The notes below the pieces were generated by a model, which searched no databases, was not told where the DNA came from, and saw only the letters and a program-made list of their open reading frames with translations. Shown here in pieces: positions 4,754 through 62,590 of a stretch of DNA of 64,000 bases. The position numbers and the translations under genes are program-made. The stretch is taken from the IMG/VR virus record IMGVR_UViG_3300036770_004143, positions 124,001 to 188,000 of that record; one strand, written 5' to 3'. Position 1 is the first letter of the stretch; each line of letters starts with the position of its first letter.

Positions 4754-5242
4754 ATGGAAACAATATTAGTTCTAAATTCAGATTATACCCCCCTAAATAT
4801 CACAACGTTTAAAAGAGCAATCATATTGGTGATTAAGGGGAAAGCAGAAATTATAAAAAATGATGTGGATTTTATAAGAACAGAAACAATAAATTATGAA
4901 AAACCATTGATAATTAGACTTCTTAAATATATTTCACATAAGATGAAGAATTTAAGGGTTAATAGACAAAGATTATATAAAAGAGATAACCATGAATGTG
5001 CATATTGTGGTTCAAAAAAGGAATTAACCATTGATCATATAATACCAAAATCAAGAGGGGGTAAGAACTCTTGGGGAAATCTTATAACTTGCTGTTTACC
5101 TTGCAACCTAAAGAAGGGTGATAAGACACCAGATGAGGCAAGAATGCCTTTAAGGTTTGCACCAAAAACACCATCATTCCTATCAAATGATTCATCCATC
5201 ATAAAAATATGGGAAGATTATAAATCATCATTTGCCTATTAA
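4754..5242 (+). CDS. HNH endonuclease (McrA/COG1403-like)
   Basis: RDxxxCAYCG...TIDHIIPKSRGG...CxxCNxxK; LVLNxDYxPL N-terminus. Confidence 0.9.
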   Translation: METILVLNSDYTPLNITTFKRAIILVIKGKAEIIKNDVDFIRTETINYEKPLIIRLLKYISHKMKNLRVNRQRLYKRDNHECAYCGSKKELTIDHIIPKSRGGKNSWGNLITCCLPCNLKKGDKTPDEARMPLRFAPKTPSFLSNDSSIIKIWEDYKSSFAY

Positions 5243-5277: not shown

Positions 5278-5946
5278 ATGAAGAATGAATTTAAATCTTA
5301 TTATGTGGGTCATTTGGGAAAGCCATCATCCCATTTGGATTATTTTGAAAAAAATGTATCTGCATCTATGACACCTTATATCCTTGAAGAAAGGGAAATG
5401 AGGGCAACACAAATTGATATCTTCTCAAGATTAATGAGAGATAGGTTAATATGGGTGGCTGGTCCAGTTGAAGATAGAATGTCCACCATAATCCAAGCTC
5501 AACTTATGTTCTTGGATTCAGCAGATTCATCTGATGTAACATTACACATAGATAGCCCTGGTGGCTCTGTGAAGGCAGGTTTATCAATTGTTGATGTTAT
5601 GGATTACATTAAGTGTGATGTAGCCACAGTGAACACAGGAATGGCAGCATCAATGGGTTCAATATTGCTTGGTGCTGGAACAAAAGGAAAAAGGTCTTCA
5701 TTAAGATTTTCCAAAACAATGTTACACCAGAGTTCTGGGGGTGCAGTTGGTAATATTCAAGATGCAGAAATAACAATGAAAGAATGGCAAAAAACAAATG
5801 ATATTTTGTTTAATTTGTTGGGTCAATATTGTGGAAAAGACCCAGAGGTTGTTAAAACAGATGCTAGTAGAGATTTGTGGTTGGATGCAAATGAGTCTTT
5901 GGCTTATGGTATAATTGATAAGGTTATTGTGTCTAAGAAGGGTTAA
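5278..5946 (+). CDS. clpP: ATP-dependent Clp protease proteolytic subunit
   Basis: DIFSRLM, IDSPGGSV, GMAASMG (catalytic Ser), MLHQ. Confidence 0.95.
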   Translation: MKNEFKSYYVGHLGKPSSHLDYFEKNVSASMTPYILEEREMRATQIDIFSRLMRDRLIWVAGPVEDRMSTIIQAQLMFLDSADSSDVTLHIDSPGGSVKAGLSIVDVMDYIKCDVATVNTGMAASMGSILLGAGTKGKRSSLRFSKTMLHQSSGGAVGNIQDAEITMKEWQKTNDILFNLLGQYCGKDPEVVKTDASRDLWLDANESLAYGIIDKVIVSKKG

Positions 5947-5950
5947 AAAA

Positions 5951-5979
5951 GAAAAGGTTGGCTAAACACCAACCTTTTC
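5951..5979 (-). terminator. intrinsic terminator (strong on -, weak on +)
   Basis: GAAAAGGTTGG-loop-CCAACCTTTTC with a long T-tract on the minus strand. Confidence 0.8.
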
Positions 5980-6052
5980 CAAATTTTGAACACCTCCTCT
6001 TTTTTTAAAATCCGATTTATAATCAACAGATGCTATCTGTATGATTCAATTA

Positions 6053-6706
6053 TTATGCAAAAAATTTACTCTTTAATTGACCCCAAGCAGTAGATAAGAA
6101 TTTACAAATAATAGGGGTTAATGCTTTCATCATAATTTTCTTTGTTTCATTATTTTGTAAAAATTCTGCAATTGTATTTCTAAACACTCCTCCCAATAAA
6201 GTTCCAAAAAAACCATTTTTAAAAATACTATCTTGTGCTTTACCTAGGATAACTGTTTCAGCAATAGCATCTATAAGTTTTTCAGTAAACACATTACAAT
6301 CACCTGACAATGCTTTTACTAAGGAAGCTGGATCATCTAATAAAAAGTTAATAATTGTTTTTAATAACCAACCATCTGGAATTTTCAAATATTTAGTTAA
6401 AATTAATTTTAAGAAATATTCTAATATTGTTTGCCCAACACCTGAACCAACTGTGGAAGATGCCATATTTGCAAGATTTCCAGGGTTTAAAAAACTACCA
6501 ATACTATTCATAGTATTAGCATTCAAAAATTCTCTTAATACTTTTGTATTATTTAACTTATTAAGTTCATTTATATAATGAACTGACACATATAGTTTTT
6601 TCTTTTCTGAAAATGAGTTAAATTCTCTTATAGTTAAATTAGAAAATTTATTTTCAAATTTTTTCTGTTCTCTTATTAATTCTAATATGTTTCTTTTAGT
6701 TATCAT
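6053..6706 (-). CDS. hypothetical helical/membrane-associated protein, leader-like N-terminus
   Basis: 217-aa ORF, last gene of a minus-strand operon. Confidence 0.65.
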   Translation of the reverse strand: MITKRNILELIREQKKFENKFSNLTIREFNSFSEKKKLYVSVHYINELNKLNNTKVLREFLNANTMNSIGSFLNPGNLANMASSTVGSGVGQTILEYFLKLILTKYLKIPDGWLLKTIINFLLDDPASLVKALSGDCNVFTEKLIDAIAETVILGKAQDSIFKNGFFGTLLGGVFRNTIAEFLQNNETKKIMMKALTPIICKFLSTAWGQLKSKFFA

Positions 6707-6709
6707 TTT

Positions 6710-7810
6710 TTATCTTTTTATTTTAAAGAAATCAGGAACATTTGCATAATCACCAATAACATCTAATGCTTCCAAATTTTTACCAAATTTTTTATCTTTA
6801 TATGTATTATAACAAACTTGAATTTTATTTTTTAACCCTAATAAACTTGGTGGTATTCCTGTTGTATCATTCTTATACCTATATAAAGCATTTGTGAACT
6901 TTTCTAAATCAAGATTACATTGTCTATATGAAGCATCACTAATATTTAGTGATCCATAATCATCTTCCTTTGATTTACCTGTTTTCTTTGGTTGAAAAAG
7001 AATATAATCATATGAAAATATATTTGGATATAAATCCTTTAAATTAGTTTTAACATAATTAGCCTCCTGAGTATAGTCAAATTTAGCATCAGTTACCCAA
7101 CCATTTTTTTCCAAAGTTGCAATAACTTGCTTTTGTTGGGGTGTTATACCACCAACATTTGCCCCAGTTGCTGGTTTATAGAAAAATTGGTCTTGTGTGC
7201 TTGGATATAATTTTGGATTGAAATTTGGTTCATTTGATAGGAATTCAAATATTTGTGTGATACTTAATTTTTCATATTGTTCAGGTGAATTTAAAAATCT
7301 CCTTTCTTGAACCGGAAATTGTGAAGCACCTTTAAATCCATAACTAGCAACTGATTCATTAACTTTTTTTATTGTTTCAGAAATCTTTTGACTTAATCCA
7401 GAACAAGTAAATGGTTGTGAACTTGTGAAATATTTTTGCCCATTATTATTACCAATAAGATAGGTGTTTAAAGTTCCATCACTATTTATATTCTCCAAAT
7501 CAAAGAAAACAGCACTATCAACAGCATAATTATTATTAGTTTCATTAAGCCCTAAAATGCCAATTCTACCTAATTGTTTTGATGGTCTAGGTTTTCCTGT
7601 TATTTCTTTAGTGTTTGGATTCCAACCTTTAAATCCAGTGAAATCACAAAGATTTTGATTAACTATTTGATTAGCTAATGATTGAGTGTGATTTGGTGTG
7701 AAACTCTTTGTTGGATCAAAAGTATTATTTGTTGCCTGCTCTTTTAGAGCATTATGCATATATAATATTCTTTTCTTTTCAGAATTTTCAATATTTAAGT
7801 TAATTTTCAT
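6710..7810 (-). CDS. hypothetical, leader-bearing (..ALKEQ)
   Basis: 366-aa ORF. Confidence 0.7.
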   Translation of the reverse strand: MKINLNIENSEKKRILYMHNALKEQATNNTFDPTKSFTPNHTQSLANQIVNQNLCDFTGFKGWNPNTKEITGKPRPSKQLGRIGILGLNETNNNYAVDSAVFFDLENINSDGTLNTYLIGNNNGQKYFTSSQPFTCSGLSQKISETIKKVNESVASYGFKGASQFPVQERRFLNSPEQYEKLSITQIFEFLSNEPNFNPKLYPSTQDQFFYKPATGANVGGITPQQKQVIATLEKNGWVTDAKFDYTQEANYVKTNLKDLYPNIFSYDYILFQPKKTGKSKEDDYGSLNISDASYRQCNLDLEKFTNALYRYKNDTTGIPPSLLGLKNKIQVCYNTYKDKKFGKNLEALDVIGDYANVPDFFKIKR

Positions 7811-11015: not shown

Positions 11016-11745
11016 TGTTTTTTACTGTACCAAACCTTTTTATTAATTGTATATTTTGCATTAATTTATCTATATTACGCCTATAAACAGTAATTTGCAA
11101 ACACACTTTTACTGAGTCTTTTCCTACTGGTATTGGTACAAAATCTATTTCACCTCCAGTCAAATATGGCTTTCTTAAAGTACTAGTATTATCTATTGGT
11201 GGTTGTTTTACTTGCATATTTTCTGTTGAAGAATATCTTATATTAACAAATTGTTCAGCATTTGCTTCTGGGCTATTAGGTACATTATTCTTACCAACAA
11301 GTGTTGCTTGTATTGAAAATTGTGTTTGCAAATTAGGTATTGCATTTTTCAAAGCAGCAATAAAAGACTTGGCTCTATTTTGACCCAAAGCAATATTTTT
11401 AGAACCATATGTGTCCTCACCTCTATATGTTACTGCTGAAACACCAGGTGTGATAATAGCACTACTTACTTTATTATTTGAAAATAAATCCATAGCTCTC
11501 CTAAACTCATTAGAATTTGTATCAACAATACTAGAACCTAATTTAAATAATGCTTTACCTAATTGTGTTTCTTGTGTCATTTGTGCATCTTGTGAAACAT
11601 CTCCTCTATCTCTAACAGCATATGGATCAAATTCACCCCTCTCACGATTTGGGCTCAAATCTCTAGGTGGTAGTGCTTGCTCATATATTATTCTTTTTAC
11701 TAATTTATTTAAACCAGATTCTGTTAATTTGTATTTTTTTTCCAT
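11002..11745 (-). CDS. leader-bearing protein with OmpA-C-like domain
   Basis: MEKKYKLTESGLNKLVKRIIYEQ leader; NIALGQNRAKS resembles the OmpA-like NxxLSxxRA motif. Confidence 0.55.
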   Translation of the reverse strand: MEKKYKLTESGLNKLVKRIIYEQALPPRDLSPNRERGEFDPYAVRDRGDVSQDAQMTQETQLGKALFKLGSSIVDTNSNEFRRAMDLFSNNKVSSAIITPGVSAVTYRGEDTYGSKNIALGQNRAKSFIAALKNAIPNLQTQFSIQATLVGKNNVPNSPEANAEQFVNIRYSSTENMQVKQPPIDNTSTLRKPYLTGGEIDFVPIPVGKDSVKVCLQITVYRRNIDKLMQNIQLIKRFGTVKNIKCP

Positions 11746-11818
11746 TTTATTTTTTTCTATAAATATATCATTATTTGATTTTTTTTTGTATATTTGTACT
11801 CCACAAAACACAAAACAA

Positions 11819-12472
11819 ATGAAATTAAAATTAAAAAAAGAAAGGCAAATCTGGGTATTTAGTGATCCCCACTACAACCACAAGAATATATGTAGGGGTA
11901 CAACAAATTGGAGAACCAAAAATAATGAAGTCCCCACAGACAATACCAGGGATTTTGAAACATTAGACAAAATGAATGCTGCAATTGTGAATAATATCAA
12001 TGCAGTTGTTAATCAAGATGATATATTAATATGCTTGGGTGACTGGTCTTTTGGGGGATTTGATTCAATACAAGAGTTCTATGATAAACTAATATGCAAG
12101 AACATACACTTGGTATTAGGAAATCATGACGACCACATTGAGAAAAACAAGTCTGACATACAGAGGCTGTTTATGAGCGTTAATTCCTATGTTGAACTTG
12201 AAGTTGATGGTAATAAGTTTGTATTGTGCCACTACCCCATAGCATCCTGGAATGGCTTAAATAAGGGCATAATGCACCTACACGGACACTGCCACCTTCC
12301 AACCAATAAAAGGTTCGGAAAAGGGAAAAGAATTGACGTGGGGATGGATGGACACCCAGAATTTAGACCATACAATTTGACAGAGGTTGTTGCATTACTA
12401 AACAAACAACCTATTGCATCAGATATGGGGTTTGACCACCATACTGAAGAACTTTTAAATGTTGTGGGATGA
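11819..12472 (+). CDS. calcineurin-like metallophosphoesterase
   Basis: SDPH, LGD, GNHD, HYP, HGHCH motifs. Confidence 0.9.
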   Translation: MKLKLKKERQIWVFSDPHYNHKNICRGTTNWRTKNNEVPTDNTRDFETLDKMNAAIVNNINAVVNQDDILICLGDWSFGGFDSIQEFYDKLICKNIHLVLGNHDDHIEKNKSDIQRLFMSVNSYVELEVDGNKFVLCHYPIASWNGLNKGIMHLHGHCHLPTNKRFGKGKRIDVGMDGHPEFRPYNLTEVVALLNKQPIASDMGFDHHTEELLNVVG

Positions 12473-20004: not shown

Positions 20005-21054
20005 TTATTTAAATAAACTATCAAATTTTGGATAACCCCAACCATACCAATCATCACGACCAGGCTTACCTCCATCTGTAAGATTTTTTGTTAGATATTC
20101 TTTTAAGTCATTTTGGGTTTTAATTTCTGGGTTATATTTTAGCAATAGACCAACTGCAGCTGTGCCATGTGGTGTTGCCATAGATGTTCCATCCCAACTT
20201 ACATAAGAACCATTATCTTTAAAACAAGACCAAATCTGGACTCCTGGTGCAATACCTACCAAATTACTACCATATTGAGAAAAGGATGCTTTATTACCTC
20301 TAACATCATGAGCACCCCAAGAGATGACATTTGGTAATGCACCTGGGAATGACAATATTCCAGTTCCATTATTACCGGCAGCAGCATTAACAAATGCACC
20401 ATTATTCACAGCATCATTTATTGCACTTGTTATTGTCTTATTTTCAGTGGGTGCACCCCATGAGAAATTAAACACCAATAAATAATCTTTAAAGTTATCT
20501 TTCCATACATTCATTGCATGATTAATTGAATTAACCAAACTTTCTGTGGATCCGCCTCCATTACCACCCAAACCTTTTTGAGCCATAATTAAATCCCCAT
20601 GATTAACACCATTCACATAACCAACGCCTAATTTATATTGGGGGTGCTTACCTAATATAATACCAGCAACGTGATGACCATGTCCATGTCCATCATTTTG
20701 GTTAGAATCAGTTGTAAAGTCTTTGCAATATTTCTTATCCACAAATTGGTTGTCTGACGTTAATGCCGTATGAGTTGGATATGCCATTGTATCAATAACA
20801 CAATAAAGAATCTTACGTTTAAACTTCTCCCCTAATTTTAATTTATTATCAAGAAATTGACTTTGTAAAAAAACCCATCCCCAACTTGGTTGATTATTTA
20901 AGGATGATTCTGTTGATAAAGCCTGTATTTGGGTTGGGGGCAAATCAAGAATAACATCATTACCTTCTTCCAATGCTTTGAAATGTTTTGCAATTAAATC
21001 AAAATTAATTTTCTTTGCAAGAGCAACGTCTTTTGATGAAAAATTTAAATTCAT
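20005..21054 (-). CDS. S8 subtilisin-like serine protease
   Basis: VIDT, HGHHVAG, AAGN, GTSMATP. Confidence 0.92.
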   Translation of the reverse strand: MNLNFSSKDVALAKKINFDLIAKHFKALEEGNDVILDLPPTQIQALSTESSLNNQPSWGWVFLQSQFLDNKLKLGEKFKRKILYCVIDTMAYPTHTALTSDNQFVDKKYCKDFTTDSNQNDGHGHGHHVAGIILGKHPQYKLGVGYVNGVNHGDLIMAQKGLGGNGGGSTESLVNSINHAMNVWKDNFKDYLLVFNFSWGAPTENKTITSAINDAVNNGAFVNAAAGNNGTGILSFPGALPNVISWGAHDVRGNKASFSQYGSNLVGIAPGVQIWSCFKDNGSYVSWDGTSMATPHGTAAVGLLLKYNPEIKTQNDLKEYLTKNLTDGGKPGRDDWYGWGYPKFDSLFK

Positions 21055-27170: not shown

Positions 27171-27694
27171 TGAAAAAAGAAACCCTAAAAAGAATATTTG
27201 ATTTTCTTGAAGAAAAGGAAGGGAAATCATCTATTAAATGGAAATTAATTAATGATATACCATTAACAGAAGAAGACTTAAATTTTGAAGGTGATTTATT
27301 TTTAAGAAATTCAAAAATAACCTCATTACCAGAAGGTTTGAAAGTTGGGGGGACATTAAATTTATTCAAATCAAAAATAAAATCATTGCCAGAAGGATTG
27401 AAAGTTGGTGATGATTTGGATTTAAGTGAATCTGATATAGAGTTTTTACCAAAAGGATTGGAAGTTGGGGGTGATTTGTATTTACTTGATACACCCATAA
27501 CTTTTTTACCAGAAGGTTTGAAAGTTGGTGGTTATTTGGATATAAGAGATACAAAAATAACTTCCTTGCCAAAAGGATTGGAAGTTGGGGGTAATTTGTA
27601 TATCTATAGAACACCATTAAAAAAATACACAGATGAACAAATAAGAGAAATGATAAAATCTGGATTTATAAAAGGAAGAATATTTAGGCAATGA
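27170..27694 (+). CDS. LRR-2 (5 units)
   Basis: Same caps and repeats; TAATG coupling. Confidence 0.9.
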   Translation: MKKETLKRIFDFLEEKEGKSSIKWKLINDIPLTEEDLNFEGDLFLRNSKITSLPEGLKVGGTLNLFKSKIKSLPEGLKVGDDLDLSESDIEFLPKGLEVGGDLYLLDTPITFLPEGLKVGGYLDIRDTKITSLPKGLEVGGNLYIYRTPLKKYTDEQIREMIKSGFIKGRIFRQ

Positions 27695-35920: not shown

Positions 35921-35995
35921 CGCAGGGTCGTATAAGGGTTAGTATATTGGGCTCATAACCCAGAGATATAGGTTCGAGTCCTATCTCTGCAACCA
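35921..35995 (+). tRNA. tRNA-fMet (CAT)
   Basis: C1:A72 mismatch, GGG/CCC anticodon stem, GTTCGAG T-loop, encoded CCA. Confidence 0.9.
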
Positions 35996-36002
35996 GTTAA
36001 AA

Positions 36003-36076
36003 TAGGATGTGGCGCAATCCGGTAGCGCACTTGCTTTGGGAGTAAGTAGTTGCAGGTTCAAATCCTGTCATCCTAA
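36003..36076 (+). tRNA. tRNA-Pro (TGG)
   Basis: TAGGATG/CATCCTA acceptor stem; CTTGC-TTTGGGA-GTAAG anticodon arm. Confidence 0.9.
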
Positions 36077-36095
36077 CAAATGTCCCCTAACCTAA

Positions 36096-45986: not shown

Positions 45987-46060
45987 GGATCTGTAGCTCA
46001 GTTGGTAGCAGCAAAACGCTCATAACGTTGAGGTCGCAAGTTCAAGTCTTGCCAGATCCA
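45987..46060 (+). tRNA. tRNA-CAT (Ile2/lysidine or elongator Met)
   Basis: GGATCTG/CAGATCC acceptor stem, CTCATAA loop; lacks initiator hallmarks. Confidence 0.85.
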
Positions 46061-46074
46061 CAACATTATTAATT

Positions 46075-46149
46075 TGGCATATAGCTCAAAGGTGGAGCAC
46101 AATTCTGATAAGATTGAGGTTGCTGGTTCAAGTCCAGCTATGCCAACCA
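46075..46149 (+). tRNA. tRNA-Ile (GAT)
   Basis: TGGCATA/TATGCCA acceptor stem, CTGATAA loop, CCA. Confidence 0.9.
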
Positions 46150-61129: not shown

Positions 61130-61159
61130 AATATACTTTTACTTAATAATAATAAAAAC

Positions 61160-62590
61160 CATAGATTATGTAAATTTTTCCCAAAAATTTTATTTGAGAA
61201 ATTGGCAAATAAATTCCTTTACAACCTGTGTGGGGGAAATTGAAGTTTTATGTTGTATGGGGAGGGGGCAAATTTTACCACAAATTTTTTAATTGTCAAA
61301 CAGGCCATTAAAGCCCCTTTTGACCCCCACAAATGCATTATAAGGGGGGACACGGCTGGGGGAGGGGGCCCCACACAGGGGTATAACCCCATCCAGGGGG
61401 GCGTAGGGGTCCCGTTATGGTGGCTGACGTTATGGCAGTCCCCCCTTGTGTTGTAAGTGTTTGATTGTGAGTGTGTTGTGTGGGTTGCTAGTTAAGTGGT
61501 TGGTTTATAATACATTATAACATTAGTAAAACATTAACACCCCCTTAACTAGGATATATAAACCCTTGTAATACAGCCCCTTAACTAATGAGATAACATT
61601 AACTAAACTTTAATTGCCCCCACTGGTCGGGGGATGTGATCATGTGTAAGCCCCTAACATACAATATGTTATACCTGAAGGGACATTATGGTGGGAGGGG
61701 AACATTAACATAATATTAACCCCCTTAACTAGGGGGCTATGCAATAATCTATAATGCACTGATCATCCATTAGTTATGTGGAGGGACCCCCTAATTAAGG
61801 GGGAACAAACTTTAACATACCCCAGGCTAAAAAGTTACTAACACGACAGGATGTCAGTACGCCCCCTTAATTAGGGGGAACTGTCTATGTTATAAGCCAT
61901 TATGTGTGATTTAAATAGGGGGTGTTAATAACTTTTTATTTATCCCCACATAGTTAACCCCTTATAAATCACAACATTATATAGTGTGACATCTTGTCAC
62001 CAGGGGGAGTTTGGCACAGTTTTTGCACATAACAATACCCCTCCGGAGGGGGCAAAAATAGGGGATAATCCCCAAGCAAAACTGCCCCTACATACCCCCC
62101 ATACCATAATTGCCCCTCACATAGTTAAAAAGGGCAATTATGAACTAAAATTGCCCCTCACATACTCAAAAATACTATATACTTTTCCTAGCAAAAAATA
62201 ATGAGTTATGGAACAAGGTGGGGGTAGCGAATGTAATGAGCCTGTAATCCCCCATCACCACCCTTCAATTAGCCCATATATTACATATAATGAACCTTTA
62301 TTGTCAATATGATATGACACATAGGTATGTCATTATCTATTGTTAGAAATCAAATATGCCCCATTACAATCATATAGTAATTTATACAACCCCCTCTGGG
62401 GGTATAAAACAAATTAATACTTATGATATAGTTATAGGGTTTTAGGTGTCTATAATAGGGCAACCATTAAGCCATATGGCTTTTATTATGCCCACACCCA
62501 GACCATAATCAGTAGGGGAAATAAGTTTGAACGCAGCAACCCGCCAAACAGATGCGGTAGCATCGTGTGGGGGTGGGGGGATGTGAGAAA
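61160..62590. other. GC-richer non-coding control region (origin / terminus / injection-control candidate)
   Basis: No credible ORF; G/C runs, more than 10 hairpins, repeated motifs. Confidence 0.7.
62012..62027 (+). promoter_or_regulatory. sigma-54 (-24/-12) consensus site
   Basis: TGGCACAGTTTTTGCA with canonical GG-N10-GC spacing. Confidence 0.6.

Follow-up and report, generated by a model that had tools for sequence, protein, structure and literature searches.

A conserved extended Shine-Dalgarno sequence with no gene behind it in a large phage of Bacteroidota

In Bacteroidia the 3' tail of the 16S rRNA is sequestered by bS21, bS18 and bS6, and normal ribosomes of these bacteria cannot use a Shine-Dalgarno (SD) sequence (PMC7797042). 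The exception described so far is rpsU, the gene for bS21, which carries an extended SD of 9-13 pairs, is the only such gene in Flavobacterium johnsoniae and is translated preferentially by ribosomes lacking bS21 (PMC9976891). The 13-bp SD-ASD helix sterically excludes bS21 and forms only when bS21 is absent or released, and 65% of replete ribosomes lose bS21 on rpsU mRNA (PMC9976891, PMC13000457, PMC13000453); the result is bS21 autoregulation. Many aquatic phages of these hosts encode a bS21 of their own (PMC9723584). How host bS21 is displaced, and how the autoregulatory rebound of the host is overcome, is an open question raised in PMC9976891, whose authors speculated that such phages need a factor that facilitates bS21 exchange and that rpsU autoregulation would be the host's counter-measure.

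Three further kinds of system are relevant. ORF-less SD-type mRNA stabilisers of Firmicutes (STAB-SD of cryIIIA and the polypurine stabiliser of phage SP82) bind 30S subunits without starting translation, and protect long mRNAs from 5' exonuclease when placed at their 5' end. Decoy or sponge RNAs (CsrB/RsmZ for CsrA, 6S RNA for RNA polymerase) titrate a cellular machine by presenting the recognition sequence of its natural target, and a decoy of this kind aimed at the 16S rRNA tail is not known to us. Leader-peptide attenuators and 'start-stop' mini-ORFs place an SD before a tiny or empty reading frame that overlaps a terminator stem. No gene-less extended SD in phages or in Bacteroidota was described in the papers searched.

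The locus examined here lies in a 64,000-nt stretch (the window), bases 124001-188000 of a 270,075-bp IMG/VR virus record that has 30% G+C, uses all three stop codons, and carries 12 tRNA genes and a tmRNA gene. The sequence GAACACCTCCT is found at 5988-5998 on the plus strand, followed by C, a run of seven T (6000-6006), ATCCGATTT (6010-6018) and a hairpin (6021-6046). It is flanked on the left by a clpP-like protease gene (5278-5946, plus strand; Pfam CLP_protease, E = 2e-56) and on the right by a convergent, fast-evolving 217-aa ORF (6053-6706, minus strand). A sequence-only reading had reported this element as an exact copy of the 16S rRNA 3' end, and the observation and its coordinates are confirmed. 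That reading placed the element next to a late operon, which could not be verified: Pfam, PHROGs and Atlas return nothing for ORF 6053-6706 or for the next minus-strand ORF (6710-7810).

Read on the minus strand, the intergenic region comprises in order the small hairpin (6046-6021), a TATAAAT box (6021-6015), an A/U-rich leader that is unpaired in the predicted fold (6014-6001), the extended SD AGAGGAGGTGTTC (6000-5988), where the strand reads AGGAGGTGTTC, then four A, a TTG that opens a frame of 6 codons plus a stop (5982-5962), and a 13-bp hairpin (5980-5950; fold z = -3.15) followed by a T-run (5949-5941). The last hairpin is the only terminator-like site called between 5000 and 7000, and it is called on the minus strand. 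It could also serve clpP on the plus strand, but the U-tract there is poor. The sequence-only reading invoked this terminator, although it lies just to the left of the interval that reading had given (5980-6046). The extended SD can form 13 consecutive pairs (12 Watson-Crick and one G.U) with positions 1530-1542 of a GGAACACC-type 16S tail.

On its own, the match is suggestive rather than decisive. The exact 11-mer is unique in the window and in the whole genome, with about 0.008 copies expected per window from base composition; with up to one mismatch, 2 copies are found against 0.37 expected. Runs of 13 or more contiguous pairs with the tail occur twice in the genome against 0.3 in shuffled sequence. 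When bulges are allowed, the element is the best duplex partner of an AC-type tail in the genome, but only narrowly (-22.4 kcal/mol against -21.5 kcal/mol for a coding-region site), as G-rich coding sites then score well. The claim that no SD precedes other genes in the window holds genome-wide: upstream of 272 ORFs the sequence is 55-72% A at most positions from -15 to -5, G falls to 3-8%, and SD words are at or below background. AGGAGG occurs 13 times in the window against 13.1 expected. This is the Bacteroidia style of initiation region.

Conservation is what rules out chance. ClpP has more than 599 viral relatives in IMG/VR. In nearly all of the 80 best loci, and in most of 160 more found with two divergent ClpP queries, clpP is followed by the same arrangement: a hairpin that overlaps or follows the clpP stop codon, AGAYTT, [A/G]GAACACC[C/T]CCTTT, 8-15 T-rich bases, TTTAT and usually a second hairpin. 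Removal of duplicates leaves about 67 distinct versions. A hairpin is present at the terminator position in all 67, with different stem sequences, and the leader is A-rich throughout. The upstream hairpin varies in sequence, shows compensating changes among relatives and is absent where the convergent ORF ends close to the box. The element is single-copy in this genome and in five relatives' genomes, which excludes a repeated promoter or iteron. A search of 5700-6300 against Rfam 15 gave best hits of 14-22 bits against gathering thresholds of 35-115 (for example, GibS at 21.6 against 115).

Each version was aligned, in minus-strand sense, against the four 16S tail types found in Bacteroidota. 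Of the 67, 62 (this window included) form 13 to 15 contiguous pairs, and 45 form 15, spanning positions 1528-1542; pairing stops at 1543 and at 1527. Positions opposite tail A or C (1531, 1534, 1535, 1536, 1538 and 1539) are almost invariant. Positions opposite tail U or G vary freely, but almost only by transitions that keep a pair: at 1537 there are 59 G and 8 A, at 1540 and 1541 there are 7 or 8 G and the rest A, at 1530 there are 56 C and 11 U, and at 1529 there are 44 U, 15 C and, as the one exception, 8 non-pairing A. Transversions are concentrated at 1532/1533, where the classes are AC (52), AT (10), TT (3) and TC (2). These four classes are exactly the variants found in the 16S genes of 64 sampled Bacteroidota genomes with a readable tail, of which about 10 have GGAACACC, 12 GGAATACC, 3 GGATTACC and the rest GGATCACC; the earlier statement that the 16S of Bacteroidia ends in GGAACACCUCCUUU is therefore only partly right. 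A correspondence between motif class and the tail of each phage's own host is inferred, as the individual hosts have not been identified.

This pattern is what selection for pairing of a minus-strand transcript with the 16S tail would produce, and we consider it likely that such pairing is the selected property. It also speaks against the plus-strand 16S-tail mimic proposed in the sequence-only reading. Although the plus strand of this window matches the tail exactly over 11 of 11 nt, 59 of 67 relatives read CCCCC where 16S is invariably CCUCC, and the G at 1529/1530 is often A on the plus strand, so that the element would be a poor mimic for proteins that bind the tail. Every common departure from the tail sequence is of the kind that keeps a wobble pair only if the minus-strand RNA pairs with 16S. 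A related but unlikely alternative is a plus-strand anti-SD look-alike, as part of the clpP 3' UTR or as a small RNA ending at hairpin 6021-6046, which would pair with the extended SD of host rpsU mRNA and block bS21 synthesis, or soak up tail-binding proteins. In its favour, host rpsU SDs often read GGGGG, with which CCCCC would pair perfectly, and in some relatives (loci L024, L083 and L017; relatives' loci are designated by L and a number) the hairpin is followed by a T-run on the plus strand. The wobble pattern can also formally be mirrored by a plus-strand RNA pairing with an unidentified G-rich target. However, the conserved 5' part (T[A/G]GAAC) matches 16S positions 1528-1532 but has no counterpart in the host rpsU leaders examined, and the element does not always accompany clpP: five clpP loci lack it, and L181 appears to have it without clpP.

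The element resembles the rpsU site of the hosts. Among the bS21 genes of 15 of the sampled Bacteroidota genomes, 13 have a strong SD about 10 nt before the ATG, which reads AAGG[A/G]GGTGT in genomes with an AC-type tail and AAGG[A/G]GGTAT in genomes with an AT-type tail; the GGGGG form, used by most of the phage elements, occurs in 5 of the 13. Both share very long complementarity to the tail, the core words AAGG[A/G]GGTGT, an A-rich leader and an otherwise SD-free genome. However, the helices are not the same, as that of the phage covers 1528-1542 and those of host rpsU about 1532-1544. A scan of viral contigs for TTRGAACACCYCCTTT also found its reverse complement directly before real start codons in unrelated contigs, in both the GGAGG and GGGGG forms (AAAGG[A/G]GGTGTTCYAA then ATG), showing that the word does act as an SD in this kind of phage.

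Unlike rpsU, the phage element is followed by no conserved ORF. A terminator stem starts about 13-17 nt after the SD core in every version (about 13 nt here). A canonical start codon at SD spacing exists only in this phage and L007 (TTG), in L026, L034 and L041 (GTG) and in L308 (TTG). Elsewhere the position holds GTC, ATC or TTC, often followed by TAA; an NTC-TAA block occurs 8-9 nt after the core in about 27 of 48 sequences, but with non-start triplets (GTC, TTC), and is absent here, so that neither a conserved mini-ORF nor a 'start-stop' is supported. The 6-codon TTG frame (5982-5962, minus strand), which begins 9 nt after the SD core and overlaps the 5' arm of the terminator, is thus not a conserved feature and is probably not functional; no role for it is supported.

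The same short distance bears on a second idea of that reading, a sensor that binds only bS21-lacking ribosomes and toggles the terminator. In this view, a 30S subunit with a free anti-SD would bind the nascent SD and cover the 5' arm of the terminator, which the P-site and entry channel of a bound subunit would overlap, and transcription would read through into the antisense of clpP, tying ClpP output to the pool of bS21-free ribosomes. The spacing is conserved, clpP lies antisense directly downstream in most relatives, and an extended SD is selective for bS21-free ribosomes (PMC9976891, PMC13000457). Nevertheless, this remains an unlikely rival. In L181 the gene beyond the terminator does not appear to be clpP, and in a second, unrelated phage group (L124, L189, L197, L164 and L223) a tRNA-like 3' end or an unrelated ORF lies there. 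The time for 30S binding before the hairpin forms is inferred to be very short, and there is no evidence of read-through RNA. Consensus folding of 48 aligned elements with RNAalifold, in which the terminator stems were misaligned, gave only a weak pairing between the SD and the 3' arm of the terminator (-3.15 kcal/mol), and no supported antiterminator pairing was found. With no conserved leader ORF or start codon, no mutually exclusive pairings and nothing downstream on that strand to regulate except antisense clpP, the element does not qualify as a leader-peptide attenuator.

Several features favour the minus strand as the one transcribed, although this is inferred. Besides the wobble pattern, the terminator of this window has a proper U-tract only on the minus strand. 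In L181 and in the L124 group the same architecture recurs (upstream hairpin, TAAAT, SD, about 10 nt, terminator), and there the hairpin is followed by a U-tract only in SD sense. As weak evidence, 48 of 67 terminator regions fold better in SD sense; an automated U-tract count selected wrong helices in many cases and is not relied on. In L181 the left neighbour is a 179-aa ORF with no similarity to the other neighbourhood proteins compared; ClpP itself was not in that comparison, but the C-terminus was judged unlike that of ClpP.

Assembled contigs from four lake-water metatranscriptomes, derived from a strain about 95% identical, cover clpP, and in two runs continue through the terminator and the SD to end at 6016 and 6018, inside the TATAAAT box, with coverage of 5637-6018 overall. 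This fits a minus-strand RNA of about 70 nt starting near 6017, but would equally fit a plus-strand 3' end just before hairpin 6021-6046 and continuous with clpP, as the contigs are unstranded and their ends imprecise. The absence of coverage over 6019-7116 may only reflect divergence of the fast-evolving ORF in the sampled strain. The box itself, of which ATAAA is conserved across relatives, lies 11-17 nt upstream of the SD core and may be a promoter or initiation region, or an A/U-rich ribosome-binding enhancer. A conserved stop codon does not explain it, because the convergent ORF stops anywhere from +13 to +79. No recognisable Bacteroidota promoter (TTTG ... TAnnTTTG) precedes the element, only weak partial matches being seen by eye, and in some relatives the ORF stops only 13-30 nt before the SD, leaving little room for one.

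The RNA is either such a transcript of its own or the last part of the 3' UTR of ORF 6053-6706, and our preferred explanation allows both. A separate and unlikely reading is a 3'-UTR element that holds a 30S subunit, either stabilising the mRNA as SD-type stabilisers do in Firmicutes or capturing ribosomes that have just terminated on the ORF for local re-use. The element always lies downstream of a homologous, same-strand ORF (the homologues in L161 and L181 being weak), which in several relatives stops only 13-30 nt upstream. However, the Firmicutes stabilisers act at the 5' end against 5'-to-3' decay, whereas here a terminator hairpin already protects the 3' end and leaves no downstream message on that strand. 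Captured ribosomes would be the rare bS21-free ones, and the RNA contigs do not extend from the element into the ORF, though strain divergence could hide this.

Eight of ten relatives' records checked encode bS21, and the two without it are fragments of 35% and 47% estimated completeness. These are evidently the bS21-encoding phages of freshwater Bacteroidetes described in PMC9723584, which does not mention the element. Both phage bS21 and the element point to the bS21/anti-SD corner of the host ribosome as a phage target. In relatives the bS21 gene lies about 30 kb away, and the five copies whose upstream sequence was read have no SD, which rejects the element as the SD of a phage bS21 gene. 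The genome of this window, estimated to be 90% complete, has no bS21 gene by HMM or tblastn.

The interpretation given in the sequence-only reading is thus supported in part: the relation to the 16S tail, selection on the motif, the extended SD with no real gene behind it and the link to bS21 hold up. Our preferred explanation, to which we give about even odds as a whole, is an ORF-less, rpsU-type extended SD RNA that engages the host anti-SD. An SD of this class with nothing to translate would capture bS21-free 30S subunits, or help push bS21 off, starving host rpsU mRNA of the ribosomes that translate it and easing replacement of host bS21 by the phage's own, which most relatives encode. The analysis itself establishes the presence, uniqueness and conservation of the element, its base-pairing-type variation, the lack of an ORF, the terminator and the SD-less phage genome; the transcribed strand, binding to ribosomes, any preference for those lacking bS21 and the decoy or displacement role are inferences. 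The specific decoy or displacement role, which would answer both points raised in PMC9976891, is tentative and held at less than even odds, and its bS21-exchange part cannot apply to this genome as stated unless a bS21 gene lies in the missing ~10% of the record.

In its strongest form, which is possible but doubtful, these phages would make a small non-coding RNA whose 13-15-bp helix with the 16S tail expels or keeps out host bS21 and outcompetes rpsU mRNA for bS21-free subunits, disabling the autoregulatory rebound and opening the ribosome to phage bS21. Unlike CsrB/RsmZ, it would present a single site rather than repeated motifs, and its partner would be the rRNA tail itself. It would then be categorically new, and the first described factor for bS21 exchange. 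The element is a concrete candidate for that missing piece, amenable to direct testing with existing tools for F. johnsoniae. Even if the decoy idea is wrong, it would be an independent natural read-out of 16S-tail pairing, may serve as a marker of host tail type for uncultured phages, and is an unannotated conserved feature of a large group of freshwater jumbo phages.

A DNA-level site (protein binding, promoter or packaging signal), or the leftover SD of a lost gene, with no RNA-pairing role, is very unlikely. G5/C5-rich palindromes that look like protein-binding sites do occur elsewhere in the window (61150-62150), and an ancestral bS21 gene could once have sat here, as many relatives encode bS21 elsewhere. 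However, the single copy per genome and the fit of the variation to wobble pairing with 16S argue against a protein site, the phage bS21 genes read lack an SD, and a remnant would not remain intact in 62 of 67 lineages across a ClpP divergence of about 25%. The closest cellular homologues of the phage ClpP are from Bacteroidota (Psychroflexus and Olivibacter, 47-50% identity), and several phage-like contigs sit in Bacteroidetes, Saprospirales and Flavobacteriaceae bins.

A second family, comprising the viral contigs L124, L189, L197, L164 and L223, which are unrelated to the clpP group, has the same architecture: a hairpin, TAAAT, AAAGGAGGTGTTCTAA, about 10 nt and then a terminator. In this family, the element lies downstream of a 348-aa minus-strand ORF, and in L197, L164 and L223 a tRNA-like 3' end with its own terminator is located just beyond it. 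ORF-less extended SDs therefore may not be confined to one phage lineage. In the relatives, a semi-conserved block [A/G/T]TCTAA is present 8-9 nt after the SD core (columns about 47-53 of A1, the alignment of 48 elements), and it puts a stop triplet right after the triplet that would occupy the P site. This block was found in about 27 of the 48 sequences and is absent from this window. In the same alignment, the purine run of the SD (AAAGGGG) resembles the 5' arm of the terminator (AAGAAGGG), and both can pair with the terminator's 3' arm, an alternative pairing that RNAalifold proposed only weakly (-3.15 kcal/mol).

The phage bS21 genes of five relatives (L227-L231) have no SD. Three of the five (L229-L231) share an upstream pattern composed of TTGTCA, about 20-24 nt, TATTTCT, and the ATG about 5 nt further on, which suggests a phage promoter with a very short leader.

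The region at window positions 61150-62150, about 1 kb without long ORFs and richer in G+C, is packed with G5/C5 palindromes and repeats, for example CCCCCTTAACTAG twice, CCCCCTTAATTAGGGGGAAC, CCCCCTAATTAAGGGGGAAC and GGGGAGGGGGC twice. By its appearance, it resembles an iteron or origin-like array, or an array of regulator-binding sites. A repeated coding motif (aaatCACC[C/T]CCaacttYcaaNccttYtgg) recurs in several large genes at many sites genome-wide, for example on the minus strand at window positions 27467, 28048, 28228, 28411 and 29222. It probably encodes tandem repeat units of a protein family, and it inflates the counts of G-rich SD-like words.

An HNH homing-type endonuclease gene (window 4754-5242, plus strand; Pfam HNH_5/HNH; phrog_16726, E = 2e-40) sits directly upstream of clpP in this genome and may be a mobile insertion. 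A second protease-like gene (window 20005-21054, minus strand; phrog_3677, E = 4e-37) and a phosphoesterase (window 11411-12472, plus strand; phrog_547, E = 3e-47) lie among otherwise unannotatable neighbours. Moreover, the phage carries a tmRNA gene (genome positions 120765-121186, about 2.8 kb left of the window), with an unusual predicted tag peptide, and 12 tRNA genes, four of them in the window (Met, Pro, Met and Ile; window positions 35921-36077 and 45987-46149).
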